This document shows, in pieces, positions 10,463-55,105 of a stretch of 64,000 nt of DNA (position 1 is its first letter; every line of letters begins with the position of its first letter). Position numbers and translations under genes: made by a program. The notes beneath the pieces were generated by a model. The model saw only the letters and a list, made by a program, of their open reading frames with translations, was not told where the DNA came from and did not search any database. The stretch covers positions 1-64,000 of the IMG/VR virus record IMGVR_UViG_3300043219_000566. One strand, given 5' to 3'.

Positions 10463-10474
10463 ACACACACACAA

Positions 10475-10501
10475 GGAGCCTGCGCGAATCGCGCAGGCTC
10501 C
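10475..10501 (-). terminator. 12-bp hairpin after the tasA stop (terminator or processing stem)
   Basis: GGAGCCTGCGCG-AAT-CGCGCAGGCTCC, followed on the minus strand by TTGTGTGTGTG rather than a U-tract. Confidence 0.5.
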
Positions 10502-10519
10502 CTGCATGGGCAGACAAAT

Positions 10520-11644: not shown

Positions 11645-11690
11645 GGTACTTCTCCTGTGTGTGTGAATGAAACAATGTCTTCTTTCAAAG

Positions 11691-14300
11691 AAGACGCTTT
11701 TCTCAGTCGAGCAACTAGTGCTCGTCGGCACGCTTTGTTTTTCCGGATGTCTGGCCCTCGGCAGCGCGCTCCTTTTGCACGGATAACTACCTTCACTCGG
11801 CACGCTGTAGTCATCTGGATGTCTCGGCTCCGGCGGCGCGCTTAGTTACTCTGGGGGTCTAAGACCTAACGACACGCTAATTGCTGCTGGGAGACTTGTT
11901 CGTGACGGCGCGCTAGTCCCTTCTGGGTAGCTGTTTCGTGACGGCGCTCTATTAGTCCGTGGGTGGCTGCGTCTTCTCGGATCGCTAGGAGCGCGCGGAT
12001 GACTATCACGATACGGCGCGCTGAATCCCTACGGATGACTACCCGATCAAGGCGCGCTAGACGTCCACGAGTAGCTGTCACAAAGCGGCACGCTGCTGCT
12101 ACACGGATAACTAAATGCGGCAGGCGCGCTGTTCAAACATGGGTGGCTAGGGCGTGTTGGCGCGCTCAGGGCCTCTGGATTACTAAACGTTTCCGGCACG
12201 CTGTACGTCAACGGAAGACTCGTGTGATGCGGCACGCTGGGGCAATGCGGATGACTAACCAGGGCTGGCTCGCTCTCTTGTCATGGAGATCTAGGATGGA
12301 ACGGCACGCTCTGTCTTTCCGGGTGACTACCGCCGATTGGCGCGCTACTTCATCCTGGGTGACTGGACTACGTCGGCACGCTGCACGTTCGTGGGCAACT
12401 GGTGGATTGCGGCGCGCTCCGACTCACTGGGTAACTATCACCTGGTGGCGCGCTGGGGCAATCTGGGTGACTCGCACGATACGGCGGGTACGCGGCACGC
12501 TGAACTCGGCCGGGTGACTCATCAGGGACGGCACGCTCTTTTGTCGTGGGGATCTAGGCTGGAACGGCGCGCTCGGCCTTTCCGGGTGGCTGCGGTCGCG
12601 TGGCACGCTAAATCTAGGCGGGTATCTGGCCAAAAATGGCGCGCTTATGCAGCCCGGGTGGCTGACATTGCTCGGCACGCTGTACCTCAACGGAGATCTT
12701 TGTGAACGTGGCACGCTTATACGACACGGATGACTCTGGGTATGCGGCACGCTGAACTTGAGCGGGTGTCTCGCCCCGGTTGGCACGCTCCATCGTCCAG
12801 GGTGACTGGCGCGACATGGCACGCTGCACTTCTGCGGTTGTCTCCAGTCGCTTGGCGCGCTAGTCTTCTGCGGGCAACTTTAGTCGCACGACACGCTAGT
12901 CCCGCCTGGGTAACTCCGCCTTTTTGGCACGCTGGAGGAAGCTGGATGTCTACCTCGCCGCGGCACGCTAATTCCGAACGGGCGACTTATGACGCGCGGC
13001 ACGCTCCGCCCCGGCGGTTGACTGCGACTCCTTCGGCACGCTCAAGCGGTACGGGTTGCTGAGCGAACTAGGCGCGCTTTCGCGGAACGGGTGACTGTGA
13101 CTGTACGACACGCTCCGCTCGCTTGGATAGCTCCTTCTGTGCGGCGCGCTACGGTTGTTCGGGTGACTGCCACGATACGGCGCGCAAAGGCCCCTCGGGT
13201 GGCTGGCCAAAGACGGCGCGCTGGGACGGCTCGGGTGACTTAGTGGAGCTGGCGCGCTTATTGTGCGCGGAAGACTAACGCGACATGGCGCGCTCGTACG
13301 GTACGGGTGGCTATTTCGGAGCGGCACGCTAGGGTGACAAAGGAGACTTTGCTCACTCGGCGCGCTCATTCGATACGGGTGACTGAGCAAGCTAGGCGCG
13401 CTCTAAACAAGCGGTTGTCTCGTCCTGCTCGGCGCGCTGTAACCTGTCCGGGTGACTACCGCTTGTCGGCGCGCTCACTGCTTCTGGGTAACTGCCGTTT
13501 CTCGGCACGCTGAGTAGACGCGGGTAACTACCGCCTGCAGGCGCGCTATCGCTGACCGGATGACTCGGATGGAACGGCGCGCTGTGCACGTTTGGGCAAC
13601 TATTTCCGCATGGCACGCTGCACAAGCTCGGGTAGCTCGCATCATGCGGCACGCTGGTTCCTGACGGGTAGCTTGCAAGCTCAGGCGCGCTGCGCTCGCA
13701 CGGGTGACTTCTCCGCTGTGGCACGCTTTTGTCGTACGGATGACTTCTATCCTCCGGCGCGCTGATATTCTGCGGGTAGCTAACGGATGACGGCGCGCCT
13801 TCGCCGACTGGGTAACTAACGTGATACGGCACGCTGACTTCTGCTGGGCAACTTTCGACATACGGCACGCTCGACCAGCGCGGGTGTCTTGTAGCGCGTG
13901 GCGCGCTTTCTTCCCGCAGATGACTGTGCTGGTACGGCGCGCTATCTCCTTCAGGGGTGGCTAGAGCGATGCGGCACGCTATTACGGAACGGGTAACTCG
14001 GCCTAATTGGCGCACTGGACCGACACGGGTAGCTCGTGGCACGCGGTACGCTTATGTCCTACGGGTGTCTGGCATCTCACGACACGCTGTTCTTGCAAGG
14101 ATGACTTCCGCCAGACGGCGCGCTAAGTTGTCCCGAGTGGCTTCTATTGGACGGCGCGCTCGGCTGGCTCGGGTGACTGACAATGGACAGCACGCTAACT
14201 TCGTCGGGGTGACTGAGTTTCCACGGCGCGCTAATTGTGCCCGGATGACTAGCGTTGGACGGCACGCTGTAATCCAACGGGTAACTCCACTACTACGGCG
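11691..14300 (-). ncRNA. TIGR-like array, upstream half (about 72 units of 36 nt plus one truncated unit)
   Basis: Same alternating GGCRCGCT / GGRTRACT 8-mers with 10-nt variable gaps from 11691 to 14297; a few 37-nt units and a partial unit at 12483-12493. Confidence 0.85.
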
Positions 14301-40569: not shown

Positions 40570-40768
40570 CGGTGTCTTCCGAACTATCCAGATTCGGACG
40601 CTCAGCCTCGTTGGCTGCGTCTCTGATCTTCTGCTCCGCGTCGCGGGCAGCCTGTTCCTCGCGCCTGCGGCGATCTGCCGTAGCCGCTTGTTGATCTTTC
40701 TTCTGAGAGCGCCAGATGCCAAGTGCTTCCAGCACTGCTCGAAGTATGAAACTAAGCCACTTCATCAC
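40526..40768 (-). CDS. i-spanin (Rz)-like protein
   Basis: N-terminal hydrophobic helix followed by the charged coiled coil RRRREEQAARDAEQKIRDAANEAE. Confidence 0.45.
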   Translation of the reverse strand: MMKWLSFILRAVLEALGIWRSQKKDQQAATADRRRREEQAARDAEQKIRDAANEAERPNLDSSEDTDDPMGVEHWNRKRR

Positions 40769-43700
40769 GCCGTCCTCGGCAAGTACGGTTCCGGCACGCC
40801 CATCTTCTCTAACTTGGCACGCAGCTCGGCTGCGGCCTCGGGCTCCTTCTTCGGATCAGGCTTCTCGTCCCAGCGCAGGAACAGCTCCTTGTCGACGTCG
40901 ATGGCGTAGCCACCGTTAGCAAACTTGCTGTCGTCAACGAGATCGTAGAGCCCGTTACACACGCCCTTCGGCGGCAGTGGGATACGAGCCAGATTGCTCA
41001 TGCACCAATCGATGAGGCAGTTCGTCCGCATCATCAAATCGATAGAGCCCACGGCTACCTCGAAGATCAAAGCGTCATGCACACCCAGAGCAATACGGAA
41101 GTCGAGCGAGTAATTGCGCTGCACGCGATACTGCTCGCGCGCATCACGGCAATTATACACCGCCTTGTTCAAACATTCCGCTACCGTGCTCTGAATCGGA
41201 AAATTGCAAGCCTCTCGCTCCTGCTGTGACATCACGGACGAGTCGTCTACCGTGTGGAACCGCCGATAACGCCAGCACGGGTTGATCAAATAGCCCGGAG
41301 AATGAACTGCCTGGCGACACAGATCCAAGAACCGCGACACCTCGACAAACTCGCTGTGGAAACTGTTGATCATCGCCTGGCAATCGTCGGTCGTAACCTC
41401 GACGCCCTCCTGCTTTAGCTCGCGGGCAATCGCCCCGGCCGAACGGCCGTAAGGGATGCCGAAATTGACGGTTTTGGCCGCCACGCGCTTGTCCTTACCG
41501 ATGCTCTCGACGTAGCCCTTGGGCGGGCCGTGCATAACGGCGCAGTACGGCAGCTTGAAACCGCTGATCGCGCGCTCGGCGTGCAGGTCTCGCTTCCAGG
41601 GAATCATCTTCACGGTGGTGTCCACCGCAGTAGAGAACACGTGCCATTGCCCAGCACGATCCTTGTACTCCCCGTAACGCGTACCGGACGGGATCTCGTC
41701 GCCCTCCCTGACGGCGATATCACGCACCCAATCCGGGTGCAGCCAGCGGTACGGCTCGCCTAGCGCGTCAACCAGCACCGGGTAAGGCGGACGCTCTGTC
41801 AGCACGTTCCAGAATTGCAGGTCCCCGGACAGCAGAGCCAACACGATCAGCTCAGCTTGGCAGTAGTCGGCTTCGACCAGCACATAGCCGGGCTGCGCCA
41901 TAAAAATAGAACGGATCTTGGGCGGAGCCTGCTCCCACTTGGCGAACATAGCGTGCAGCTCAGGCTCGCGGCGTTTGGGCAAGTTCTGAAGATTGGGCTT
42001 TCGGGAAGCCCAGCGACCGGTCTCCAGTATCTGCAGAATATGAGTGCGCACCCGCCCGTCAGGGTCGACGTGCTGCATCAATCCGCCCTCGGTAATCTCG
42101 TGTGTATCCGGGTCGATTACCGGCAAGCTAGTGAAGTTCTTGCAGACCTGATCCACGAAACGCAGTTTACGCAGCTGGTTGGCCACCGGGTCCTCGGGAG
42201 ACAAAATCCCCAAGGTTTCCTTGTCGGTGCTGGGCGCACACTCCAGCTGACGTCTATCGCGCAGCACCCGATCCCAGTCGATCGGTGGCTTATCGGTGCT
42301 TTTGATCGGAGTCAACCCGCAGCAGTAGGCCCCCGCGGGCCGAAGGCGGATCGGCACGAGCGGCGTATCCCGCTTCTTGCCATTGAACGCCTCGCCGAAC
42401 AGTAGCTCGCGCACGTGCTGGATCGAGCGAAAATTGAAAGCTGGCCATTCGATCTGCTTGCGCAAGTAATCGAGCAACTCCGTTTTCTTGCGATCGTAAG
42501 TAATCGCCAGCTCGGTGATCCGATCCCGGTCTGCCAGCAGACCGGTTTCCTCGATCTCCAAAATGCCCACGCACGAACGCATCTCTTCGGACAGTAGCTC
42601 AGCCAGCTTCGCGCGATCCTCGTGGCACATATTGTCCTGCTCAGCGTACCGCTCATCGAGCCGCTCGTCGCAGCGCCAGGTCACGTCGGCATCGAACAGG
42701 GCGTAGAGATACAACACGTGCTCCGGGATCAATCCGAAGCCCTTGGCAGCTGGCACCGCGAGTTCGTCGAGCCATCCCTGCAGCTCGGTTTCGTACCGAT
42801 CCACGTCGGTGTACTTGAGCATCAGCGAGGACAGATCCTGCTTGGCACTCTCGTACAACAGGTGGTGCTTCAGCATGGTGTCGAAGCCGTCGGCGTACTT
42901 GTCGATAAAGTCGATGCCCAGCGATTTCACCCACGGATAATCAGCCCGCAAATTGTGTCCGCCGATCCGCGTGCCAGGATGCAGCAGTAGCCGCGCCAGC
43001 TCTTTGCTGACTTCCGCCATCTCCGCGTCGGTGAAATTGGGCACCAGAGCGTTGAGCACCTCGACGCCCATCTCCGGGACTTTGTTGCCAGCCGCATCAG
43101 TCCACACGTAACCCAAGGCAGGCTGTCCGTCGTCGTCTACGTACTCCATGTCGTACGCCAGCGCCTGCGAAACAGTGGGCTTGGGGAAGCTAATGAGATT
43201 GGGATGCCCGTTCACGGAAGCGTAATGCCGCGGAAAAGGTACCCGCGCGTGGCGGTGGAAAGGAATCAACACCGCGTGCCCGGATTTGTACGACAACTGC
43301 AACGTCAACAGCTTGCCGTCGGCCCACGGGCTACGACCAGACCACTCGCAGTCCAACGCGAGCTTGTTCTCGCTCTCCTGCAACCGCTGGTCTACGTACT
43401 CACGTACCTGATGAACCGAGCGCAGTACACAAGCATTGTTGACCTGCCCGTCCACGTCCTGATACTCCCGCGGAATCTGTTTGCGTATCGTGCCGCAGGC
43501 AAAACTCGACGCTCGCGCCAGATCGTTGGACAGCCCGTCCCGCATATTCGGCTCACGAGCTACCGCAGCCGGGTGCATGGTCGGAAAGGTGTTGATGACG
43601 ATCTCTTCGGGCACCTGCCCGGCGATATCGCACTCTTCGGGCTCCTGCCCACTGCTGTCGCATTGACGCGGCAAATGCGTCGTCCAGAGTCTTACCGACC

Positions 43701-44349
43701 CGCGGCTCTTGGTCACCGATGAGCCCCTGCCGTGAAAATGCTTGATAGCCTCGGTGCCCAGCAGAATCACTAGCTTCGGCCGGATGATAACCAGTTCTGC
43801 CCACAGCAACCAGGCACATTCCTTGACCCAGGCCTGCTTGAACTTACCACCCGGCGGAGGCTGGAAACGGCAAATGTTGGTAAAGTAGGCATCGTCGAGA
43901 AAGTCAGCGATACCCTGCTCGATCAAGCAACGCTGCAGCTCGCGTCCGCTCTCGCCGACGAACAGATAATCTGTGTCGTACTCGGTGCGGCCAGGATGTT
44001 TGCCGACGACCACGACCTTAGCGCAGCCGGGCCGCGGGCCACGAGGAAAGGCTTGCGCGGCCGTGCCCCGATTCGCATCGCGGGCAATCGGCTTGAACCC
44101 CGTGTGCCCAGGAATGAACTTCGCCGTATAAGGCAACCCGACGCCGATCGCGTCGGGGATCGGGCGGTTGTACACGTCACATAGCAAGTTCCAGAGAAAC
44201 GCCATGAAGTCGAAACGGTTCCGAAACGAATCTTCGAGAATGCTAGCCAACGCCGGACCCAGCGGAGGACCGTACGGGCGCTGCTCCTCGACGTTGCGCA
44301 ACGCCTCGACCCACGGCGGCAACCTCGGGTCGATAATCACTTGGCACAC
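40765..44349 (-). CDS. polA: family A DNA polymerase with N-terminal uracil-DNA-glycosylase-like domain and 3'-5' exonuclease
   Basis: UDG-like VGKHPG...FVGESG...YFTNIC...MHPAAV; Exo I LDCEW, Exo II HNLRAD, Exo III YALFDA; Pol motif A EADYCQAE, motif B RVAAKTVNFGIPYG, motif C VHDAL. Confidence 0.93.
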   Translation of the reverse strand: MCQVIIDPRLPPWVEALRNVEEQRPYGPPLGPALASILEDSFRNRFDFMAFLWNLLCDVYNRPIPDAIGVGLPYTAKFIPGHTGFKPIARDANRGTAAQAFPRGPRPGCAKVVVVGKHPGRTEYDTDYLFVGESGRELQRCLIEQGIADFLDDAYFTNICRFQPPPGGKFKQAWVKECAWLLWAELVIIRPKLVILLGTEAIKHFHGRGSSVTKSRGSVRLWTTHLPRQCDSSGQEPEECDIAGQVPEEIVINTFPTMHPAAVAREPNMRDGLSNDLARASSFACGTIRKQIPREYQDVDGQVNNACVLRSVHQVREYVDQRLQESENKLALDCEWSGRSPWADGKLLTLQLSYKSGHAVLIPFHRHARVPFPRHYASVNGHPNLISFPKPTVSQALAYDMEYVDDDGQPALGYVWTDAAGNKVPEMGVEVLNALVPNFTDAEMAEVSKELARLLLHPGTRIGGHNLRADYPWVKSLGIDFIDKYADGFDTMLKHHLLYESAKQDLSSLMLKYTDVDRYETELQGWLDELAVPAAKGFGLIPEHVLYLYALFDADVTWRCDERLDERYAEQDNMCHEDRAKLAELLSEEMRSCVGILEIEETGLLADRDRITELAITYDRKKTELLDYLRKQIEWPAFNFRSIQHVRELLFGEAFNGKKRDTPLVPIRLRPAGAYCCGLTPIKSTDKPPIDWDRVLRDRRQLECAPSTDKETLGILSPEDPVANQLRKLRFVDQVCKNFTSLPVIDPDTHEITEGGLMQHVDPDGRVRTHILQILETGRWASRKPNLQNLPKRREPELHAMFAKWEQAPPKIRSIFMAQPGYVLVEADYCQAELIVLALLSGDLQFWNVLTERPPYPVLVDALGEPYRWLHPDWVRDIAVREGDEIPSGTRYGEYKDRAGQWHVFSTAVDTTVKMIPWKRDLHAERAISGFKLPYCAVMHGPPKGYVESIGKDKRVAAKTVNFGIPYGRSAGAIARELKQEGVEVTTDDCQAMINSFHSEFVEVSRFLDLCRQAVHSPGYLINPCWRYRRFHTVDDSSVMSQQEREACNFPIQSTVAECLNKAVYNCRDAREQYRVQRNYSLDFRIALGVHDALIFEVAVGSIDLMMRTNCLIDWCMSNLARIPLPPKGVCNGLYDLVDDSKFANGGYAIDVDKELFLRWDEKPDPKKEPEAAAELRAKLEKMGVPEPYLPRTA

Positions 44350-45407
44350 TCCTGCTGCTGTTGCTGATTCTTGGACAACGCGTCCTGCTTAGCAATGAAG
44401 TCCCAGAGCCAAGCGCGAGTATGGCTGCCAGGATCACCGTCGGGCAACGGCACGTAGAACGCCCCGCGGTCCAGCCGCAAGCTGCCCAACGCGCCGCTAT
44501 TGAGCTGCTGCGTCACTAGCCAACCAACAGCCTTGGCATCGGCGTCCACCATGACAGCCACACGAGCATGTTTGCACTCGCGGAACAGCAGCCCCATCTG
44601 GTGCATCGACAAGCTCTTGCCCAGCATCGCTGTCGCTGCGTCGCCGACGCGCGCAACATCGGTAACGCCCTCGGTAAGCACGACGATATCGTGGCATTTC
44701 GCCCGATCCAGATTGTAGAGCACCTGGCTCTTAGCGAACCCCGGCAAGGTCCAGTACTTCGGTTCCTCGCAAACACTGAGCCCCGGAACCGCGCGGCTTT
44801 GATAGCCGACCAAGATGCGCTCGTCGTGCTTGACCTGCAGAATAGGAATGAAGATGCGCCGAGCCAGAAAACGTTCTGGGCTGTCGTGGTAATACATCCA
44901 GTAGTACCGCTCGCTCAGCTCAACGCAATCGTACCCACGCCGCTCCAGATACGCGCGCGCAGGATGTGTAGCTGGAAGATCCGCCAGAAGGCAATACTGC
45001 CCTTCAGGCAACTCCCGCGGCTTCAGCTCGGGGGGCTTATCGAGCACCTGCGGCGCGGCTAGTGCGCGGATCTGCCCGAAGTGCGGACGAATCATGTCGG
45101 CCAGATATAGATCCCCGGCATTGGCGTTGCAATGGTAGCACACTGCCGGATGCAAGATACGCGTCCTCGTGCGCGCGTCGAACGTACCAAACATGTACGA
45201 AATCCACAGCCGCGGCCGGTGGTCTTTGCAAAGCGGGCAACAAACACAGTAATACTCGCAATGATGAATTCGCATGCGAGTATGACCTTTCGAGCGGTAG
45301 TACGTGATCTCACCCCGCGCGCCGGGGCTGGAGATCACGACTTGCGTAAAACGAGCTTTCAGCGTACGGTACAAAACCGGATTGAGAACAGTAGGTTCCA
45401 TGCTCAC
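44337..45407 (-). CDS. DNA primase (Zn-binding plus TOPRIM)
   Basis: CCPLCKDH...CYHC; GYQSR, KYWTLPG, LYNLD, LTEGVTD, MVDAD. Confidence 0.85.
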   Translation of the reverse strand: MSMEPTVLNPVLYRTLKARFTQVVISSPGARGEITYYRSKGHTRMRIHHCEYYCVCCPLCKDHRPRLWISYMFGTFDARTRTRILHPAVCYHCNANAGDLYLADMIRPHFGQIRALAAPQVLDKPPELKPRELPEGQYCLLADLPATHPARAYLERRGYDCVELSERYYWMYYHDSPERFLARRIFIPILQVKHDERILVGYQSRAVPGLSVCEEPKYWTLPGFAKSQVLYNLDRAKCHDIVVLTEGVTDVARVGDAATAMLGKSLSMHQMGLLFRECKHARVAVMVDADAKAVGWLVTQQLNSGALGSLRLDRGAFYVPLPDGDPGSHTRAWLWDFIAKQDALSKNQQQQQECAK

Positions 45408-46885
45408 GTATCCCTCGTCTCCGCAGCTACGCTCGGGCGGGTCCCGCCGGAAGCAGTGTTAGTCCCGGCCGGGCGACCCAGCTGACCATGTTCTTCGTCG
45501 GTCACCTGCCGCCCAAGTTCCTGTTCGTCTGTTCGGACCAGTTCTCCTCGATCATTGAGTACGTAACCAGCAACTTCCACCCGACAGCGCCAACCGTCGA
45601 TACGCACCCAGATTGCTTTCTCCGGGTTAGAGCGCGAGGCCGATAAGTTCAGATACGCGATCGGCTTGTCCTCAGCGCATTTCACGCCCAAGCACAACAC
45701 GTCGTGCATGTACTGCGCGAACAGCTTGCACTCGGCCGCGTCCATGTGACTAGGCTTGCGCATCGCATTTCGATTCCCCGCCGCATCCATCTGGTGCGCC
45801 AGCACAATACAGATCCCTAAGCGACCTACCAGCATCTTCACTTTCTCGCACACCGCTTGAACCTGGTGGCGCATGTGGCGACTGGGATCGAGGCCCATCA
45901 TACCCATGTGGGCAGTTACCATCGGCAATACGTGATCAACGATAACCAGCTGGCCTAACGCTTTGTTACGTTGCAAAGTCTCCAGCGTAGTTTCCAACTC
46001 GCCCGCGCCACCGTAGCCTTGCCCCTCTTGAGCGCCCGACATATCCACCAACGTCAGCTGCCGCACCAGCGCAGCATGCGCTACTTTTAGATCCGGTAGA
46101 ATCTCCAGGTCGATCTCGCTGGCTTTCTTGCCTTCCAGCTTCTCACGGTGGTACTTGTTCATGAACGATATCAGCAACTTGGGCCACTGTTTTCGTGTGG
46201 ACTCTTCGTACGTGATGTAAGTCACACGGTGGCTGGGATCGCGCTTGATAAAGTCGCAAGTCAACGAATGACACAAGCTCGTTTTGCCACCCTTCATCGG
46301 CCCGAGCAGCCCAATTGCTTCGCCAAGGCGAATACCACCCATGGTTGCGTCGACCGGCCCGCAGCCAGTCTTGAGGCGCACCTCTTCAGTGAACGCATCG
46401 ATTCCCAGCCCTGCTAAATCCTCGACTTTCACCGCGCTGACGCGCGACGCAGTCAGTGCTCGGTGCATCTCCTCGACTAACTCGGTGGTAACGCCCATCT
46501 GCAACATGCTCTGCATGTGCGGCTCGGCCCGCCGAGTGAGCACGAATTCCCCTAGCAGGGGCGCGATTAGCTGGTGATTGAGCGCGGAAGCAGGATAAGC
46601 GAAAACGAGACTCAACGCCTGCGCGATAGAGTCATCTGTCAGCCCGTGGTAAGGAAACTGTTCCTGCAGCAACCGCATGACTGCTGGTGCAAAATGCTCT
46701 TTGGGAGTAAGCGCTCCGTGACGTCGGAAGTTATCCCGCGAAACAACCCAGAATGCCATGTCCAGAATCTCGGATTGCGAGTTGAACAAGGCTTCGTCAA
46801 CGCGGGACTCCGCGGCCCGGATCGTATCCGGATCTCGAACTAAGTGGATTATCAGCAACTGGCGTTGCTGCGGGGTCATTGCCAT
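45404..46885 (-). CDS. DnaB-like replicative helicase (SF4)
   Basis: GPMKGGKT Walker A, TYEE, VIVDHV Walker B, LAHQ, and a C-terminal SR arginine-finger region. Confidence 0.85.
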   Translation of the reverse strand: MAMTPQQRQLLIIHLVRDPDTIRAAESRVDEALFNSQSEILDMAFWVVSRDNFRRHGALTPKEHFAPAVMRLLQEQFPYHGLTDDSIAQALSLVFAYPASALNHQLIAPLLGEFVLTRRAEPHMQSMLQMGVTTELVEEMHRALTASRVSAVKVEDLAGLGIDAFTEEVRLKTGCGPVDATMGGIRLGEAIGLLGPMKGGKTSLCHSLTCDFIKRDPSHRVTYITYEESTRKQWPKLLISFMNKYHREKLEGKKASEIDLEILPDLKVAHAALVRQLTLVDMSGAQEGQGYGGAGELETTLETLQRNKALGQLVIVDHVLPMVTAHMGMMGLDPSRHMRHQVQAVCEKVKMLVGRLGICIVLAHQMDAAGNRNAMRKPSHMDAAECKLFAQYMHDVLCLGVKCAEDKPIAYLNLSASRSNPEKAIWVRIDGWRCRVEVAGYVLNDRGELVRTDEQELGRQVTDEEHGQLGRPAGTNTASGGTRPSVAAETRDT

Positions 46886-47423
46886 CGTCCAACACCTCTG
46901 CGAACGTCATCGGCAACATGCGTCCCAACAACGTTTTCATCTTGGGCCGCAACCGCAGCTCCGCGCGTGCAGCTTCGCGGAACTGAGACGCGATACCTGG
47001 TAACCCGGCCCGGACTGCAACGCAGAAACGAAAAGAGGGCGAGAAGCCGTTGTGTGAATTGGTCAAGATACCGACGAGATTTTCACCCACACGCAGGCAG
47101 CCCTGGAGCCGTGCTAAATAGGACTCCAAGAGCATCAACTCGTCCCGGGCTTCCGTTCCCATGAAAGCACGCGTTCTAGCGATCGCACGTTCGCCCACGA
47201 GCATGTTGGGATACGAGTTCTTCTGCTGCTCGATAAGGGCGCGTACGTGCAGATCCGGGTCGAATCCGTGTCTGAGGCAGATCGACGCAGCCTCTTGCCA
47301 AAAACCGTTCTGGCGGGTGCCTGGCGTGTACTTTCGCCAATGGCCACCCTTGACACGGACCCTCATAATGTAGCTCGCCCGGATAGCCGTTGCAACCAGG
47401 TCGAGATCAACTTCGTGGTCCAT
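46797..47423 (-). CDS. hypothetical protein upstream of the helicase
   Basis: 208-aa ORF overlapping the helicase start. Confidence 0.55.
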   Translation of the reverse strand: MDHEVDLDLVATAIRASYIMRVRVKGGHWRKYTPGTRQNGFWQEAASICLRHGFDPDLHVRALIEQQKNSYPNMLVGERAIARTRAFMGTEARDELMLLESYLARLQGCLRVGENLVGILTNSHNGFSPSFRFCVAVRAGLPGIASQFREAARAELRLRPKMKTLLGRMLPMTFAEVLDDGNDPAATPVADNPLSSRSGYDPGRGVPR

Positions 47424-47616
47424 TTGGTCACTCTGGGGTCATTGGTGCCATTCTACCACACTCCCTCAGCCACCGTAGCCTCCGGCAGCCGTCGGACTTC
47501 GCCGTGACTCCTTCGCCCCGGCCAACGGGATGATCAGTGGATTGCGTGCAAACCTTCCACCTCGGCGTCGGTGCACTCGCGATAGCAGTCCTGGCACCTG
47601 TGCATTTTCGGCTCCT

Positions 47617-49086
47617 TTACGGATAGTGAATTGTCCAACCCTTACCGCGGTAGTGGCGCAAGCGAGCGTTCGAGCGCGTCTTAAACCGCTTATCGAAGCC
47701 GTCGTCGAAGTCGACCAGTAGCCCCGTCTGACCGCGCGACAACCTTCCGGGGATCTGAGTGTTGGAAATAGGGGCCGACCTACCATCGGCTCGAACCAGA
47801 ACGTCCAGATGACGGAAATCGACTCCCTGGCTCCAAACGCCGGTAGCGATCGCGAACTTCATCGTGCCGCGCTCAAAGCGACGGCGGTACTGTTCGCGAT
47901 GCTCGGAAGTACACAGCCAACCCGGACCCTGTGGCAACAAGCCAAGCGAGCGGAAAGTCCGGACCTGCTCGGCCTGTACCGGCCCGTGGACCAACGGCCA
48001 CTGCGGCAAGAAATTGGCCTTGAGATGCAGAGCGTGCTCTACCTTGTCGACCATGATCAACACCTGCTTTTCCTGCATCGCATGTGTTGAAGCAGCGTGG
48101 GCGACCATCTGGTTACGCAACTGATTGCGCCAGACCCCGTAGCGAAACTGGGCTACGTCGTTGTCGTACGAAATAGGTACGCCTGGCACGCGGTAGACAT
48201 GCACGGTAATCGTAGCTACGCGGCCCTTGGACTCGGCCTCCTGGTACGGCAACACGTAGATCACCGGGCCGAACATGGCCTCGATCGCTAGATCCGCACC
48301 GTCGCTTCGGCCTTCGGGACTGGCGCTGAAACCAAACATGCGGCAATTACGCAAACCCCCGATTTTGCGCATGCGCTCCTCGGCCGCAGCCTCATGTACC
48401 TCGTCGTAAAGAAACAGTCGGCACTTGTCGACCGCGCAACGCTGCAACGAATCGATAGTCGAGACCGTTACACGCCGAGGAGAGTTAAAACCTCCGCCAA
48501 CTCGACCCAGCTCCTGCGGGGGTACGTGGCCGTTCAATCGCTCGAACAGCGAATTCACCACGTCGCGCCGGTAGGTACAGACAATGATGTTGCTGCTGGG
48601 ATAAGCACGCGCCAGTTGCTCTATCAAGAAAGTCTTACCCCAAGCAGTAGGCGAGTCGATCACGCCCATGTCAGCTGCAAAAATCGTGGCTAAACACTTG
48701 TTCTGGTCATCGCGGTCTTTGAGCAACTCGTGCTGCAAGCAATCCAGACGCGGGGGCGGCAGAATTAAAGGGCGCAAATCCTGAATGTCCCAATCGATAC
48801 CGCACTGCTGAAACAACTTGGTCGCGCGGTGCGTAAGCCCCGCGGTAAAGACGACACTAGAGTGCGTAGGACCCTGCTGCAAACGACACAAGTACCGGGG
48901 CTCGGTACGAAACTTCTGCCCGGTAAGGTTGACTATCCGGCGATCGTTCCGCAGCTTGAGCCCGTACTTGAAATGGCGACGTAGCAGCTCGTGCAACCCG
49001 CCGATCGTTATCCCCGCCTGGGGAATAGCCTCGACCAGGTTGCCCGAGCGCCGCATGAGTATTTTGGACATTAGCTTCTCGCTCAA
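47617..49086 (-). CDS. SF2 DEAD/DEAH-like helicase (UvsW-like)
   Basis: SPTAWGKT, DEVH, SASP, GVWSQGVD, QIPGRLSR. Confidence 0.88.
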   Translation of the reverse strand: MSEKLMSKILMRRSGNLVEAIPQAGITIGGLHELLRRHFKYGLKLRNDRRIVNLTGQKFRTEPRYLCRLQQGPTHSSVVFTAGLTHRATKLFQQCGIDWDIQDLRPLILPPPRLDCLQHELLKDRDDQNKCLATIFAADMGVIDSPTAWGKTFLIEQLARAYPSSNIIVCTYRRDVVNSLFERLNGHVPPQELGRVGGGFNSPRRVTVSTIDSLQRCAVDKCRLFLYDEVHEAAAEERMRKIGGLRNCRMFGFSASPEGRSDGADLAIEAMFGPVIYVLPYQEAESKGRVATITVHVYRVPGVPISYDNDVAQFRYGVWRNQLRNQMVAHAASTHAMQEKQVLIMVDKVEHALHLKANFLPQWPLVHGPVQAEQVRTFRSLGLLPQGPGWLCTSEHREQYRRRFERGTMKFAIATGVWSQGVDFRHLDVLVRADGRSAPISNTQIPGRLSRGQTGLLVDFDDGFDKRFKTRSNARLRHYRGKGWTIHYP

Positions 49087-50090
49087 GACAAAGCGGCCCG
49101 GTAAGACTCCTCGGCCGCGCTCTTATCTCCCAGGAAGAACCGCGCTTCGTCGAAATGCTGGGGCGGCGACTCGTGCATCACCTCCATCCAGTTCAGCCAA
49201 ATGAAATTGGCAAGCTTGACGTTATGTCGCCAGTTCGCCAGGAACAGCGCTTCCGCAGCCTCTGCGCCGTCGTCCAGGTACAGCTGCATCCAGCGCAGCG
49301 CGTAGCGGCAGAAGAAGAACTTAGGGGCGTTCAACGAAGAGGCTTTGATCCCCTTTAGCTGTATCATTTTCGCCATAGGCGCAGAGAGAATGCGCCAGAC
49401 CGGCCCGGAAATATGCGTCCCAGCCGTAGCGTCCTCTGCGCTGTATATGCCGCAGCGCTCCTTGAACAACCCGGACCGGCGCGGGTCCGCCGTGTTCACG
49501 TACCAAGTCGGGTCTACCAGATCACCGATGATGTGAAGGGCCACCACCGGATCTAGGCCGAAAATCCAACTCAGCCGCTTCCACAGCGGATGAGCCGAAA
49601 CCGTAGCGACGATTTCTCCCGGGTTAGAGAACGCCTCGACGTAGCCCGCCTTGATGGCTTTGATCACATCCGCCGGGCTATGCGATTTCAACGCTCCGGT
49701 TTCACGCATAATCGCCTGCTGAGCACGCTGGTACAGACTCACGATACGCACGTTGGTGTAGTCCACCGGCCGCGCCCTACGAATGCCCCCGTGAATCGGG
49801 TGCGGGTTCTCAAAACACAGCTGCCGAACAAGAAGTTTGGCATCGTCGAACTTCTTGAAACCGTAAACGGGATCACCGCTCGCCGGACAAGCTGTCATCA
49901 AAAAACGCGTGTGCTTGCCGTCGTTCAACTGCTTGTACAAATCTGCAGCCAGAGCTGAGTTGTGACGCGTAGCAAATACGACGTGATACTCGCTTGGCAC
50001 ATCTCCCATGTCGAGAGGAATGCCGCTGCTAAACTCGTCGACGTGAGTCTTTCCGTCGGGATCGACGAAGTGATGCACAATCTGCGGCAT
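49083..50090 (-). CDS. divergent Nop/IS110-like domain protein
   Basis: HPLWKRLSWIFGLDPVVALHIIGDLVDP...LFKERCGI and the terminal KLANFIWLNW parallel TasA IWPWLNSIDGIGEVAAAVIISEFD...LWKYAGL and KMFLKDLYCQW. Confidence 0.45.
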   Translation of the reverse strand: MPQIVHHFVDPDGKTHVDEFSSGIPLDMGDVPSEYHVVFATRHNSALAADLYKQLNDGKHTRFLMTACPASGDPVYGFKKFDDAKLLVRQLCFENPHPIHGGIRRARPVDYTNVRIVSLYQRAQQAIMRETGALKSHSPADVIKAIKAGYVEAFSNPGEIVATVSAHPLWKRLSWIFGLDPVVALHIIGDLVDPTWYVNTADPRRSGLFKERCGIYSAEDATAGTHISGPVWRILSAPMAKMIQLKGIKASSLNAPKFFFCRYALRWMQLYLDDGAEAAEALFLANWRHNVKLANFIWLNWMEVMHESPPQHFDEARFFLGDKSAAEESYRAALS

Positions 50091-50613
50091 CGTGGTCTCC
50101 TCTTGTGACCGGGGCGACGATCATTCCGCCCCGGATGTAAGCATGCTTGAAAATACACCGGACCTCGGGCAAATAGCGTTTCAGCGGGCGATTCAGCTGG
50201 CAGTTCTTGCTTCGGGAACGCGCGTGTATCCACGTCCGCAGCTTACCACGCCGATCGCCCCCGCAGGTAGTAATGTAAACGACGCCGCCTGGACACGCGA
50301 CAGTTCGAGCCAACACTAGCGCAGCTCGGCGCTTCGCGCGAGTTGAAATCACATTGAGCACGTTGGACAACGTCACAGTGTCGACTTGCTCAGCAGCGTC
50401 CTTGAGCGCTTGATCGTTGCGCGCTGAATCGAACCAGCCCGGATCGTACTCGATGTTGCCTACGTCTACCGTCTTCAATTTACCGGTCAACATCCTGTAG
50501 GGTCCGCTGCCCAGATCAAAATTGACCGAGCCAGCGCACCAACCGAAGGTGCGCTGAACTCGGTAGAAGATCTCAGGCGTCGCTCGACGAGCCGTGAACT
50601 TAGAGGCGCTCAT
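50029..50613 (-). CDS. small class I SAM-dependent methyltransferase
   Basis: NFDLGSGP (motif I), EYDPGW, DTVTLSNVLNVI. Confidence 0.7.
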   Translation of the reverse strand: MSASKFTARRATPEIFYRVQRTFGWCAGSVNFDLGSGPYRMLTGKLKTVDVGNIEYDPGWFDSARNDQALKDAAEQVDTVTLSNVLNVISTRAKRRAALVLARTVACPGGVVYITTCGGDRRGKLRTWIHARSRSKNCQLNRPLKRYLPEVRCIFKHAYIRGGMIVAPVTRGDHDAADCASLRRSRRKDSRRRV

Positions 50614-52928
50614 GCTGCCAGCTCCTCCACCTGCCCTCCTTTGCGCAGGACAATAGCCTGATCGAACGACCCCAGCAGCTGCGGAGAGTGCGTAATCAAG
50701 AAGATCTGCACCCCGGCGCTGTGGGCATACTGCTGAACGTGGCTCAGCACGCCGACGAAGTACTGGATGTTGTCCTCGTCGAGCTGGGCCGTCGGCTCAT
50801 CCAGCGCCAAAATACCCAGCCGAGCAGACATGACCTCGTTGACCGCCAGCAGAAAGCTGACGCTGAACCTGACCTTCTCGCCGCCCGAGAGCGACGAAGC
50901 GTCTCGGTCGGACGTGTCGGCGAACGTGCAGCGGAAAGAGTAGTTACCCGCATGCTGCTCCAGCGCAGCAGTGAAATCGGACTGCATCAGGTCCAAGAAG
51001 CGCTGGATATGCAGGTCAATGGCCTGCAGGAACCGGCGCGCCAGCAGCTGAGGCAACTTGCCACGATGGAACAGATCACGAGCGTCGTCCAGTGTGCTGC
51101 GCACAACGTTCACGCGATCGATTTGCTCCTGCAGCCGCTCGGCCCGCTCGATCCTAGTCAGCAACGCAGTAATCCGCAGCTTGACTCCGGCGTGCTGCTC
51201 CTCGGCCCGCGCCAGTTCAACGCGCTTGTCGGAAGCCAGCTTGATAACCTGACGACAACGCTCGATGCTGTCGAGCGTAAGCTGCGCCAGTTCGGGCACA
51301 AGCGCGGTCAACTGCCGGTTCAGCTCGCTGCGAGCTGTCGTAGCGGCATCCAACGCTTCCTTGGCCAGATTGACTGCGCGTGAACACTGGTCGGAGTTGC
51401 GCTCGGCTGTGATCTTAGAACCAGCCAGCCCGTCGTACTCAGTGATGACGCTGCGCCGCTTGCTCCGCTCCGCGTCGCTGTAGACCAGCTCAGGTTGCTC
51501 AGGCAAACCACCGACGACCCGCTGGTAGTCCTCCATGATCTTCTTGCCGTCCCGCTGCAGCCCGCTGCTCTCGGTGTCATACGCAGCGCAGGCTCGCTCG
51601 TAGTCAAGTCGCTGAGCCGCGCGCTCGCGCTTGTTTGACACCAATTCGCGGTGCCGCGGCTCAGCATTCTCACGGCGTGCACGGAACTTCTCGATCTCCT
51701 TCATCAGATCCGGAATAGCCTGACCGCACGTCGGGCAAGTCGCCTTCACGTTGCTGCCGTCCACCAACCCCCTGTAGCTGCTGATGAACGTGTCGGCCTC
51801 GCGCAGCGTGCTGCCGACCCCCTGCAGCTCAGTCTCTTCTTTATCGGTCCAGATCTCGGACAACGCTACAGGAGGCTTCAGAGCCCGGAGACGTATTGCA
51901 ATCCGGCCTGCTTCTGCATCCAAGTCATCCCGGCGAGACAGCGCGATCTGCACCGCGTTTGCCTTGGCCAAGAACTGATTGGCTTCGTCGTACTGGAGCT
52001 GCAGCGCCACGATCTGCGCAATGAGAGCCTGCACGCCGGAATCAGCAGTGGTATGCTGCTGTTGCTGCGTCGCCCAATGGCTCTGGCCGTTGACACAGCG
52101 TTCTTCAGCCTGAACGATCTTGTCCCGCAGCTCCTGGGCGCTCTCCCACCAATCGATGTCCCGCTGCGCACCCTCGGCGTCGATTTTGCTCAACTCGCCC
52201 CGTCGGTTGCTCACCGACTGCGTAGCTGCAGTCTCCTCGTGCTGCAGCCCTTCGCGCTCCTGTTTGAGCGCATCCAGATCCTCCGTGGAACGCAACTCGG
52301 GCACACCGCGCAGCTCCTCGCCCAGCATGGACCAGATCCTCTCGAATTGGTCCAAGCCGAACAGCCGGTGCATGGCCTTGGTGCGCGTGCTGTCGTCGCT
52401 GTCGACAATGGCACTGATCTGGTTCTGCTCGATGAAAGCGTAATGGCCCAAGAGCGCGAGGTCGTCGCCCAGCAACTCGCGCAACCGCTCGTCGGCCGCT
52501 TTGACACCAGAAATCTCGTGCCACTCCTCGTCGGACCCGACCCGGCGCGACTTGACCATTGCCGTCTGAGATCCCTTCATCTTAGAGCGGCGCTCGGCTA
52601 GCTCGGCTGCGGTGTACTCCTGCCCCGGAGAACTGGGCGGACCGGTGATGGAAATGGTGCGCCTGACCACGATCTCCATGTTGTCGTGCTGCAAGCCCAC
52701 CTCGAACGAACCGCTCTTGGCTTTCTTGCCGCCCGGCAGATCGCGGACGAAGTCGGCCAGGTTGCTGTACTTGCGAAAGTCACCCGTGGGAGCCGTGTAG
52801 AGCACCTCGATCAACGTGGACTTGCCGACGCCGTTGGGGCCTACAACGCCGATCAACCCGTTGGAGAAATCGAAGCGCGCTTTGGCAAACGGGCCGAGGT
52901 TTCTTAGCTTCGCGTAGGTGTATATCAT
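50610..52928 (-). CDS. sbcC: SbcC/Rad50-like ATPase
   Basis: GPNGVGKST, coiled coils with a CPTCG zinc hook, LSGGE signature, LDEPT, ITH; start MIYTYAKL at 52928. Confidence 0.92.
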   Translation of the reverse strand: MIYTYAKLRNLGPFAKARFDFSNGLIGVVGPNGVGKSTLIEVLYTAPTGDFRKYSNLADFVRDLPGGKKAKSGSFEVGLQHDNMEIVVRRTISITGPPSSPGQEYTAAELAERRSKMKGSQTAMVKSRRVGSDEEWHEISGVKAADERLRELLGDDLALLGHYAFIEQNQISAIVDSDDSTRTKAMHRLFGLDQFERIWSMLGEELRGVPELRSTEDLDALKQEREGLQHEETAATQSVSNRRGELSKIDAEGAQRDIDWWESAQELRDKIVQAEERCVNGQSHWATQQQQHTTADSGVQALIAQIVALQLQYDEANQFLAKANAVQIALSRRDDLDAEAGRIAIRLRALKPPVALSEIWTDKEETELQGVGSTLREADTFISSYRGLVDGSNVKATCPTCGQAIPDLMKEIEKFRARRENAEPRHRELVSNKRERAAQRLDYERACAAYDTESSGLQRDGKKIMEDYQRVVGGLPEQPELVYSDAERSKRRSVITEYDGLAGSKITAERNSDQCSRAVNLAKEALDAATTARSELNRQLTALVPELAQLTLDSIERCRQVIKLASDKRVELARAEEQHAGVKLRITALLTRIERAERLQEQIDRVNVVRSTLDDARDLFHRGKLPQLLARRFLQAIDLHIQRFLDLMQSDFTAALEQHAGNYSFRCTFADTSDRDASSLSGGEKVRFSVSFLLAVNEVMSARLGILALDEPTAQLDEDNIQYFVGVLSHVQQYAHSAGVQIFLITHSPQLLGSFDQAIVLRKGGQVEELAA

Positions 52929-53350
52929 GTTCCGTCCTTTTTGAGAATGCCCGCTGCAATCGCGCAGATCTCGGCACTGGCTATCGGCTCGGTCACGACC
53001 CGGTAGATGGCAATCTGCTCCCGGCACATATCGGGATCTTGTAAAGCCTCCAGGAAGCCGCGGTGGTCGCCCCACTCCGCCTCGTAATCGCTACCAAGGC
53101 CCAGCGCCAGAAACACTAAGCGCAAGTTGAGCCCCCAGACCGCGACCTGGTATTTATCGTCCGGAGCCTCCAGCTTGATTTCGTAGCGCGCTACGCTGCG
53201 ATCGAGCTTGTCCCACGTGGCTACGCTGAACGTTTGCCCCTCCACGAAAGCCACGATCATATTGCGGTCGGTGTCTACCACGGTGCCGACCGCGCCTTCG
53301 TCCAATCCGTACTCCTTGGCTGCGCCAAGACAAGACACTCGTACATACAT
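52925..53350 (-). CDS. hypothetical protein
   Basis: 141-aa ORF in the operon. Confidence 0.55.
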   Translation of the reverse strand: MYVRVSCLGAAKEYGLDEGAVGTVVDTDRNMIVAFVEGQTFSVATWDKLDRSVARYEIKLEAPDDKYQVAVWGLNLRLVFLALGLGSDYEAEWGDHRGFLEALQDPDMCREQIAIYRVVTEPIASAEICAIAAGILKKDGT

Positions 53351-53588: not shown

Positions 53589-54749
53589 CTAAGCGGCCGT
53601 CGGATCGTCGACAACCTGGTGCCTATGCTTCAGAGCGTGCACGACTTCCTTGGGGCTAGCCGCCGCCGCCAGCTCGCTGACAAAACCATGTAGCTCGGGA
53701 GCAACCTCCCGGTCCACCAGCTCGTCGATAGCGTCCTGCACGGACACAGTGGCGCTCAGCTCAGCGTCCACGTCCTGCTCGGGCATCAGCGCCCGGTTGG
53801 GCATGGGATGAAAGATGAGCTGGCCCTTCTCGATCGCAGACCCGAGCTTGTCCATGATCAACTGGTACGCGTCGGGGATAGCCACGTTGTAACGCAGCGC
53901 CACGAACGGCACCGCCACCGTCGTCGGAACACCTGCGTCGTCGGCCGCAGCCGCGGCCTGCTGGTAGGCTCCTTCGATCTTGCCCAGCCACTCGGTCAGC
54001 TCGTTCTCCCAGCGGATGTCGTTGAAGATGAACGGACGGGTCAGCAGCGAGATACGCTCGAAGTTGAAAGCACCTTCCGACGCGGTCCCCGGCTTACCCC
54101 GCCGACAGACCAGAAAAGACTTGGACGGCGGCTCGGACACCGAGCGCATCGTCGCGGAACCGGTATAGAGCCACTTGCGCCCTTCGGTCTCGCCGGACTG
54201 CGGCAAGCCGTGCCAGTCGCCGAGCACGGTGCGCTTCACGTGCTCCGGGACCCAGCTCATGTCGATGTGCCAGGCTTCCTCGATGCCCATCACGTCGCGA
54301 GTCAAGCCGTGCATGACCAGGATCTCGCAGTCGTCGGGAACACTCTTCAAGCGCTCCTGAACAGAGACGCGTGGCGTGTAGTCGAGCCCGGACACCCGGA
54401 TAGCGTCGCCGAAGGTGAACTGCTGCTGGTGTAAATGCAGCCGGGCGCTGTCGGAGTCCGGCGGCACACCCGGCCAGGCATAACCGTCCTGGCGATCGTG
54501 TTGCCCCTGGACGCACCCAACCCGGAGCCCAGCGATAGCCTCGTAGAACTCACGCAGCGTAGCAGAGTCCGGAAAGCGCTTGTCGAAAGTATCCCCCAGG
54601 AAAATCAGATCCAGCTTGTGCTCGCGGCAGTAGTCCGTGATCTGCCGCAACGCGAAGGACGTGTCCCCGACCATGTTCGGGTGAGTAGCGTACGTCGTCT
54701 TCGCGTGGTGTAGATCGCCCGCGAAAGCGATGCCGGTTGCGTCTTTCAT
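53589..54749 (-). CDS. sbcD: SbcD/Mre11-like metallophosphoesterase nuclease
   Basis: GDLH, GDTFD, GQHD, MHG, GDWH, YTGS motifs. Confidence 0.9.
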   Translation of the reverse strand: MKDATGIAFAGDLHHAKTTYATHPNMVGDTSFALRQITDYCREHKLDLIFLGDTFDKRFPDSATLREFYEAIAGLRVGCVQGQHDRQDGYAWPGVPPDSDSARLHLHQQQFTFGDAIRVSGLDYTPRVSVQERLKSVPDDCEILVMHGLTRDVMGIEEAWHIDMSWVPEHVKRTVLGDWHGLPQSGETEGRKWLYTGSATMRSVSEPPSKSFLVCRRGKPGTASEGAFNFERISLLTRPFIFNDIRWENELTEWLGKIEGAYQQAAAAADDAGVPTTVAVPFVALRYNVAIPDAYQLIMDKLGSAIEKGQLIFHPMPNRALMPEQDVDAELSATVSVQDAIDELVDREVAPELHGFVSELAAAASPKEVVHALKHRHQVVDDPTAA

Positions 54750-54766
54750 TTGTGTGCTCCTCGGCC

Positions 54767-55105
54767 TCATTCAGACCACTTGCTGTCGTCTTCGAGCGTC
54801 GACCACGCGCCGTTGAAGGCTTCCCAGCCCGCTGCAAGCAGTCGAGTAGCCGCTATCTCCACGCGCTCCTGGTCGCCATTGAGAAAGCCCTTCGCGCGCA
54901 TCCGGACAGACTTCAGCACGCCGTGCTCGCCGATTACGCCGATGACATCCACGATCTCCAGTTGACGCGGCGCGCCTGGCACGCGCAAAACGCTGCCGAT
55001 CGGCAAAATCAGATCCTCGACCGACAACACACGCTTGCCGAAATCTCGCTGCTGCCCTTGGCGAGTGTCGCGCGTGGTGAAGCGGCAATAGATCCTGATA
55101 CGCAT
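54767..55105 (-). CDS. hypothetical protein
   Basis: 112-aa ORF with GGAGG RBS. Confidence 0.55.
   Translation of the reverse strand: MRIRIYCRFTTRDTRQGQQRDFGKRVLSVEDLILPIGSVLRVPGAPRQLEIVDVIGVIGEHGVLKSVRMRAKGFLNGDQERVEIAATRLLAAGWEAFNGAWSTLEDDSKWSE

Follow-up and report, generated by a model that had tools for sequence, protein, structure and literature searches.

An array-less TasR-like protein at a fixed position in the replication and recombination module of large uncultivated phages

TIGR-Tas systems were described in 2025 (Faure et al., PMC12045711), and TasR, represented structurally by TaTasR (9mty), is the known protein that most closely resembles the product of a gene found in the viral record IMGVR_UViG_3300043219_000566. 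This record is 216,501 bp long, and its first 64 kb, the whole stretch analysed here, is referred to as the window; the gene (hereafter the target) lies on the minus strand at 49083-50090. The target protein agrees with TasR in domain order and almost in length, and the two have in common an HP-aromatic motif at the opening of the C-terminal domain as well as a long terminal helix ending in a Trp. Unlike TasR, it has no adjacent TIGR array, its RuvC acidic set is incomplete and its identity to Tas proteins is only about 10-14%. The target family also contains an invariant D-P-[TR]-W-[YF]-V loop that has no counterpart in Tas, and it has no clear Y/H processing dyad, unlike Tas. Furthermore, the target is embedded in a replication/recombination operon, whereas TasR occupies a stand-alone locus. 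The explanation favoured here, which is given about an even chance of being correct, is that the target is an array-less, highly divergent protein of the TasR branch that serves as a non-cleaving, nucleic-acid-binding accessory of recombination-dependent replication.

The Tas superfamily is already known, and an array-less viral branch of it is mentioned in one preprint (Xu et al., bioRxiv 10.64898/2026.09.09.750476). In this preprint, an array-less compact TasR branch is noted in dense viral genomes and listed by the authors as an open question, and a "divergent tas clade" that lacks both arrays and the coiled coil is described. Likened by these descriptions, the array-less branch of the preprint and the target family probably belong to the same superfamily. 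The nuclease-dead TasR repressors PateTasR and CsTasR resemble the target family in combining substituted RuvC positions with an intact Nop domain, and according to the preprint such dead TasR proteins can still bind DNA and act without cutting. PateTasR and CsTasR are accompanied by stem-loop TIGR arrays and come mainly from candidate phyla radiation (CPR) bacteria, whereas the target family has no detectable array and is confined to viral contigs.

Three further groups of proteins share parts of this architecture. The IS110 bridge-RNA recombinases IS621 and ISCro4 combine a RuvC-like domain, a coiled coil and a Nop-related C-terminal domain and form the third-best structural family for the target (Z 7.7-7.9), whereas the target lacks their DEDD tetrad, conserved serine, matches to PF01548/PF02371 and mobility. 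Nop5 and Nop56/58, the scaffolds of box C/D particles, have a comparable layout, in which a RuvC-like domain at the N terminus, itself inactive, precedes a coiled coil and then a Nop domain. Their match is much weaker than that of Tas (Z about 5, for the target model only), and, unlike Nop5, the target has no conserved methyltransferase partner, a methyltransferase-like open reading frame (ORF) being present only in the window and in one related locus, L006. The RuvC, RuvX and poxvirus resolvases have the RNase H-like fold in common with the target, whose acidic set is incomplete.

The target and its predicted domains are as follows.

49083-50090, minus strand: array-less TasR-like protein of 335 residues with an ATG start, assigned from its homologues, structural model and fold matches.
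49776-50090, minus strand: RuvC/RNase H-like N-terminal domain, about residues 1-105, from the models and fold matches at Z 5-6.6.
49593-49769, minus strand: helical hairpin, about residues 108-166 (helices 108-132 and 139-166), with the length and position of the TaTasR coiled coil.
49086-49592, minus strand: Nop/Tas-type C-terminal domain, about residues 167-335, from the TasH match at Z 10.6 and a profile alignment (hhalign) at E 3.2e-5.

A first-pass annotation made from the nucleotide sequence had called this ORF a highly divergent Nop/IS110-like protein on the basis of peptides that are indeed present in it, HPLWKRLSWIFGLD at 49551-49592, LFKERCGI at 49446-49469 and RHNVKLANFIWLNW at 49188-49229. 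They had been compared by eye with Tas segments at 11225-11263, 11144-11164 and 10598-10642, which lie within the ORF 10520-11803.

The structure of the target was predicted with AlphaFold from a 7-sequence alignment (predicted local distance difference test score, pLDDT, 76.5; predicted template modelling score, pTM, 0.74). In the model, an N-terminal strand-helix domain of the RNase H-like type is followed by a pair of long helices and by a C-terminal domain built of helices. Foldseek ranked TIGR-TasR 9mty first (probability 1.0), followed by IS621 and ISCro4 and then TasH. A Foldseek-independent aligner matched 9mty_B at Z 12.8 with 259 residues over positions 3-334, TasH at Z 10.6 over residues 111-335 and ISCro4 at Z 7.9; a poxvirus resolvase and archaeal Nop5 (1nt2, 3nvm) followed at Z about 5. 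Since Z-scores of this size are of only moderate strength when a protein is helical, the compact relative P0028, which is ~18% identical to the target, was folded from its own 56-sequence alignment (pLDDT 95.9, pTM 0.92). The same order was obtained, with TasR at Z 11.5 over residues 4-301, TasH at 8.4 and ISCro4 at 7.7. The N-terminal domain matched RuvX, poxvirus and chloroplast resolvases, YqgF, RuvC and the RuvC domains of Cas12/TnpB at Z 5-6.6, so that the first ~105 residues, for which a RuvC-type fold had been left as a question by the annotation, do adopt a RuvC/RNase H-like fold. Structural similarity to Tas and IS110, as well as to Nop5 in the case of the target model, was found rather than missing, which agrees with the original assignment and refines it, since the target is nearer to TasR than to IS110 or Nop5.

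The C-terminal domain carries the family motifs HP-L-W..LSWI, DPTWYV and F-K-E-R-C-G as well as W301, the last 25 residues being modelled with low confidence. The segment between the RuvC domain and the HP motif distinguishes two parts of the family, as it spans 39-62 residues in the target subfamily versus a median of 28 residues in the rest. In TaTasR the coiled coil is K109-H168 according to the preprint (bioRxiv 10.64898/2026.09.09.750476). The compact majority of the target family (~300 residues with a linker of ~28 residues) fits the description of the divergent tas clade given there, whereas the target subfamily departs from it by keeping a hairpin of coiled-coil length. The target subfamily thereby stands between canonical TasR and the compact forms without arrays.

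The term "highly divergent" is apt at the sequence level. The target alone matched nothing in Pfam (E up to 1), PHROGs or the PDB sequences, tblastn with the target found no match among GenBank phages, the family profiles A1 and A2 (defined below) likewise retrieved nothing from the PDB, and no meaningful match was obtained among the BFVD viral structures. A word-indexed search recovered six relatives with 42-54% identity, all of 331-339 residues, which together with the target make up alignment A1. An exhaustive profile search yielded 93 representatives, 23 of them close and the others forming a long tail of ~300-residue proteins that match mainly the C-terminal half of the target profile. 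Alignment A2 comprises 56 of these tail proteins, A3 is the family of the window's own Tas, and the merged target family contains 84 sequences. A1 and A2 represent one family (hhalign 99.9%, E 2.4e-32, 248 columns), whose members are all unnamed and have neither a Pfam domain nor a relative in cultured phages; weak Transposase_20 (PF02371) matches occur in 2 of the 56 relatives (best E 0.028). Two scans that covered 185,579 bacterial and archaeal species, with one genome per species, detected no cellular relative.

The link to Tas emerges from family profiles. Pairwise BLASTP of the target against the window's Tas returned 12/37 identities in exactly the segment singled out by eye, at E = 1.3, so this similarity is by itself not above chance. 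Profile-profile comparison with A3 gave E 0.021 for A1, E 9e-4 for A2 and E 3.2e-5 for the merged 84-sequence family (hhalign probability 73%, 273 columns), and it recovered the register that had been drawn by eye. In this register, the HP-x-W helix of the family is placed under the Tas helix-hairpin-helix motif and W301 of the terminal helix is aligned to the Tas Trp, while the alignment upstream is one residue off the earlier drawing. For comparison, the profile of the window's Tas family, which has >700 relatives, matches TasR and TasH in the PDB at 7e-21 and 2e-20.

Placed beside TaTasR (sequence from Table S1 of PMC12045711), the target appears nearly collinear over the first 170 residues, as judged by reading the two sequences rather than by a computed alignment. 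The shared landmarks, target first, are D10/D11, H43-N44/E43-N44, K80..D83-A-K85/D87..D90-S-K, HP97-98/HP101-102, helices 108-166/coiled coil K109-H168 and HP167-168/HP168-169. In addition, the published structural alignment behind the TIGR HMM (Data S1, PMC12045711) contains AF-A0A3M1VGY1, in which the signature motifs of the target family are visible under the Tas helix-hairpin-helix motif, its membership being judged from these motifs only. Family-wide, the most conserved residues are G101-G102, H167-P168-x-W170, D193-P194-x-W196, P203, G214, R262 and W301. The identifiers of the window contig and of the contigs of three relatives were not found among the listed entries of the PMC12045711 supplement.

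Read along the minus strand, the gene order around the target is Mre11/SbcD, a 141-residue ORF, Rad50/SbcC, a 194-residue methyltransferase-like ORF, the target and an XPB-like helicase, followed by a 208-residue ORF, a DnaB-like helicase, a primase and a fusion of uracil-DNA glycosylase (UDG) and PolA-type polymerase. The neighbours are listed below.

53589-54770, minus strand: Mre11/SbcD-like phosphoesterase (Pfam Metallophos), whose position is conserved in related loci.
50610-53075, minus strand: Rad50/SbcC-like ATPase, upstream of the target (Pfam SMC_N, AAA_23 and SbcC_Walker_B; PHROG 77).
50029-50613, minus strand: variable 194-residue ORF, a possible S-adenosylmethionine (SAM) methyltransferase (Methyltransf_12 at E 0.086 and an FDLGSGP motif).
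47617-49086, minus strand: XPB/Rad25-like superfamily 2 (SF2) helicase, directly downstream of the target with a 4-nt overlap (Pfam ResIII and Helicase_C; PDB XPBII at E 2e-10).
40765-47423, minus strand: the rest of the module, that is, the 208-residue ORF, DnaB-like helicase, primase and UDG-PolA polymerase (Pfam, tblastn), in an order common to all related loci.

Among solved structures, the helicase at 47617-49086 is closest to archaeal XPBII/Rad25, and archaeal XPB works with the Bax1 nuclease. The two neighbours named by the annotation fared differently, as the SF2 helicase was recovered by both of its Pfam domains and the methyltransferase is a tentative call from the match and motif given above.

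Gene order was identical in 7/7 loci fetched by protein identity, with relatives down to ~18% identity. In a helicase-based sample of 80 IMG/VR loci, many of them from contigs of 185-235 kb and all taken with flanks of 10 kb, a target-family gene was present in 60, on the same strand throughout, and in 58 of these it lay ~0-2.5 kb upstream of the helicase (the exceptions are L013 and L014). Where the gene is missing, SbcC abuts the helicase or an unrelated ORF of ~170-205 residues lies between them; the module without a TasR-like gene was seen in L011, L012, L017, L020, L018, L028, L049, L052, L069 and L078. On the helicase tree, the presence of the gene requires 5 changes versus 17.7 for shuffled labels. 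One clade of this tree has the gene in 56 of its 57 rows, and the lineage of the window falls in the other part, where the gene is missing from most relatives. The protein and the helicase are correlated in their pairwise distances (Pearson 0.93, Spearman 0.73, both inflated by near-copies), and the target-family protein evolves faster than the helicase (mean p-distance 0.66 versus 0.53). Synteny, tree and distances together indicate vertical inheritance with the module, plus losses, instead of mobility. The earlier description of the protein as domesticated fits in this respect, given its fixed syntenic position, its co-divergence with the helicase and the lack of insertion sequence (IS) features. 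The target is a fixed, operon-embedded yet dispensable gene in a large clade of uncultivated ~200-kb phages, and it is neither a mobile element nor a stand-alone defence cassette.

In TaTasR, D11 is essential, since its mutation kills cleavage, and four conserved acids lie near the metal. When these positions are transferred from TaTasR through the landmarks, on the basis of sequence and secondary structure, the corresponding residues of the target are D10, H43, K80 and D82/D83. An acid at positions 41-43 is found in 1/24 members of the target subfamily and Asp at position 80 in 7/24, and the full set of four acids occurs in 0/24 subfamily members and 3/108 other members. With the canonical mapping of RuvC beta-4, three acids are present in 17/132 members. 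An initial residue mapping (10, 65, 110) was revised, as beta-3 of the model corresponds to canonical beta-4 and D110 starts the coiled coil; an incomplete acidic site results from both mappings. The mosaic of acid substitutions across the family is the pattern expected of a decayed site, and the incomplete acidic set suggests, on sequence grounds, that the target is probably not a nuclease. No serine of the IS110 type is conserved in the 16 columns after the G-[LIV] (G-L-x-P-like) motif. The family columns aligned to the Y/H processing dyad of Tas hold conserved Phe residues, in a region where alignment and model are of low confidence.

An active structure-specific nuclease would be the alternative that keeps the RuvC domain at work. 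The target would then be a RuvC-type Holliday-junction or branch resolvase with an added DNA-binding domain, resolving the intermediates of Rad50/Mre11 and the helicase, and the resemblance of its N-terminal domain to RuvX, the poxvirus and chloroplast resolvases, YqgF and RuvC, the conservation of D10 and of acids at 82/83 in its subfamily and the location of the gene among recombination genes are all compatible with this. Such a nuclease is nevertheless unlikely, as the target has H43 and K80 at two of the mapped positions and the acids form a mosaic that is complete in none of the 24 subfamily members and in three of the 108 others.

The window also carries a very large TIGR locus, in which 101 matches to a 36-nt unit were counted against ~0.5 expected by chance. 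All units lie at 8978-10448 and 11726-14286, flanking tas, with none elsewhere in the window. The nearest unit is 35 kb from the target, and Tandem Repeats Finder (TRF) found no tandem repeats near it (47-51 kb), in agreement with the earlier remark that no array adjoins the gene. In the seven look-up loci, neither a Tas gene nor a 36-nt array was present within 10 kb, and no Tas gene was found within 10 kb in the 80 helicase loci. Among the best 80 Tas-bearing IMG/VR contigs, only the window's own is also among the contigs that carry the replication module.

A cis-encoded guide RNA was considered and rejected, with no Rfam match, no promoter or terminator signal above chance in a simple scan of the window and, in relatives, no conservation of non-coding gaps around the gene, those of at least 70 nt within 3.5 kb being rare. 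Guides could instead come from the phage arrays at 8978-14286, so that the target would load tigRNAs in trans and serve, for example, in repression or as an additional effector next to Tas. The presence of 101 tigRNA units and a canonical Tas in the same genome, the TasR-length helical hairpin of the target and the report of nuclease-dead TasR proteins as RNA-guided repressors (bioRxiv 10.64898/2026.09.09.750476) would suit such a role. This explanation is doubtful in view of the 60 gene-bearing loci without Tas within 10 kb, the seven look-up loci that lack both Tas and the 36-nt array over the same distance and the single contig, the window's own, that is shared with the best 80 Tas-bearing contigs; the ~10-14% identity to Tas and the Phe at the Y/H dyad positions (in a low-confidence alignment) also speak against it. 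The use of tigRNAs in trans, as suggested by the annotation, may occur in the phage studied here; as the general mode of the family, or as what maintains it, such use is unlikely, since relatives have no detectable Tas or array nearby.

A non-cleaving accessory of recombination-dependent replication accounts for these observations in the following manner, a mechanism that draws on the fold, the published nuclease-dead TasR proteins and the gene order. The target would bind and distort nucleic acid without cutting it, given the gaps in its RuvC acidic set and the lack of a conserved serine of the IS110 type. Possible substrates are RNA, RNA:DNA hybrids or branched DNA. Acting with the flanking Rad50/Mre11 and the helicase, it would assist or regulate recombination-dependent replication, and any guide RNA would be supplied from elsewhere.

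Several points weigh against this explanation. Z-scores of 11-13 are only moderately strong for largely helical proteins, and the homodimer prediction score of 0.00 speaks neither for nor against dimerisation. The catalytic residues were placed through landmarks and not by three-dimensional superposition, D10 (equivalent to TasR D11) is kept in 22/24 members of the target subfamily, and the acids common at 82/83 could form part of an unconventional active site. Moreover, 20/80 helicase loci lack the gene, also when the profile is iterated once, so the gene does not belong to the core of the replisome and could serve regulation or inter-phage conflict. The functional part of the explanation draws on gene order and fold.

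A more specific version of the non-cleaving accessory, in which a Tas-type RNA-guided DNA binder has been exapted into the replication/recombination machinery of the phage, is considered rather unlikely. In this version, recognition by a trans-encoded or transcript-derived RNA, or of an RNA:DNA hybrid, would, for example, lead to the opening or bending of DNA at origins or at intermediates of recombination, which would then be handed to the XPB-like helicase and Rad50/Mre11.

A resemblance without common ancestry, in which an RNase H-like domain and a helical bundle have converged on the Tas layout, is very unlikely. It would be in keeping with the pairwise BLASTP value of E 1.3, the HMMER profiles that match nothing in the PDB or Pfam, Foldseek E-values of only ~2e-3 to 3e-3 and the fact that helical folds can reach Z ~13 by chance arrangement. 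It does not readily explain why two independent models agree, along the full length of the protein, on the three best-matching families, why the profile-profile alignment (E 3.2e-5) falls in the register expected from the structures, why the landmarks run collinear with TaTasR over 170 residues or why AF-A0A3M1VGY1, a member by its motifs, stands under the Tas helix-hairpin-helix motif in Data S1 of PMC12045711. An IS110-family transposase or IS remnant that landed in the replication operon, for which IS621 and ISCro4 among the structural matches and the weak Transposase_20 matches in 2/56 relatives (best E 0.028) might be cited, can be set aside almost entirely in the face of the same insertion point in 58/60 carrying loci, the co-divergence with the helicase, the single copy in the window with no convincing terminal repeats around it (IS ends had likewise been reported missing by the annotation), the absence of a Pfam IS110 match for the target, of a conserved DEDD set and of a conserved serine, and the lack of relatives in the scanned genomes of 185,579 bacterial and archaeal species, one per species.

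In the searchable literature, including the accessible part of the preprint (bioRxiv 10.64898/2026.09.09.750476), no mention was found of the fixed genomic address, of the co-divergence between protein and helicase or of the lineage-specific losses, and neither the mosaic decay of the RuvC site nor the subfamily that keeps the hairpin of coiled-coil length was found in the searchable literature. An array-less TasR-like protein now has a reproducible address, between Rad50/SbcC and the XPB-like helicase in the replication module of ~200-kb phages. If the exaptation is true, the target would be the first RNA-guided protein of its superfamily to act in the DNA metabolism of the phage itself and not in inter-element conflict, and it would reveal the function of the array-less TasR branch. 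Should a guide RNA take part, its source would represent a new way of supplying guides; if there is no guide, an RNA-guided scaffold would have turned into a plain DNA-metabolism factor.

The methyltransferase-like ORF at 50029-50613 overlaps the start of the target by 62 nt. It has no match in the PDB, and among L001-L004 and L006-L008 a homologue at the same position (48% identity) occurs only in L006. The ORF is a variable insertion at this junction, not a conserved partner. An analogy with Nop5 and fibrillarin was rejected as a general model for the same reasons, the methyltransferase-like ORF being weakly supported and having its homologue only in L006 among seven loci.

Further variation was observed elsewhere in the module. 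The minus-strand ORF 40765-44349 encodes a 1194-residue family A DNA polymerase that is ~22-24% identical to the SPO1 and T5-like polymerases; the counterparts in relatives have an N-terminal UDG-like domain (PF03167), and the L007 homologue contains a LAGLIDADG insertion. A 193-nt gap (47424-47616) separates the helicase from the next ORF, a similar gap of 164 nt is present in L006, and most relatives have none. In L001, an HNH/NUMOD4 homing endonuclease is inserted after the helicase. A few kb upstream of Mre11, AcrVA2-like genes (PF26125) occur in two close relatives, L001 (2906-3961) and L006 (3150-4199). Twenty other large ORFs of the window, scanned for a resolvase or recombinase, gave no Pfam match of any kind (E up to 1e-3).

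The TIGR locus has a dual-repeat unit, in which CGGCRCGCT and CGGRTGACT alternate every 18 nt on the plus strand with 9-nt spacers. The canonical Tas at 10520-11643 (minus strand) has no obvious nuclease domain and contains a C-terminal Y-x6-H processing dyad. Its database version has 344 residues, and a longer, 427-residue ORF from a GTG at 11803 runs into the TIGR array. The ORFs 9717-10517 (minus strand), 13392-14042 (minus strand) and 11963-12517 (plus strand) lie wholly inside the arrays and are probably not genes, and the two on the minus strand have no Pfam match. No tRNA or Rfam match was found in the window, whose GC content is ~0.58-0.63. The GC skew is negative across most of the window, which fits its mostly minus-strand genes.

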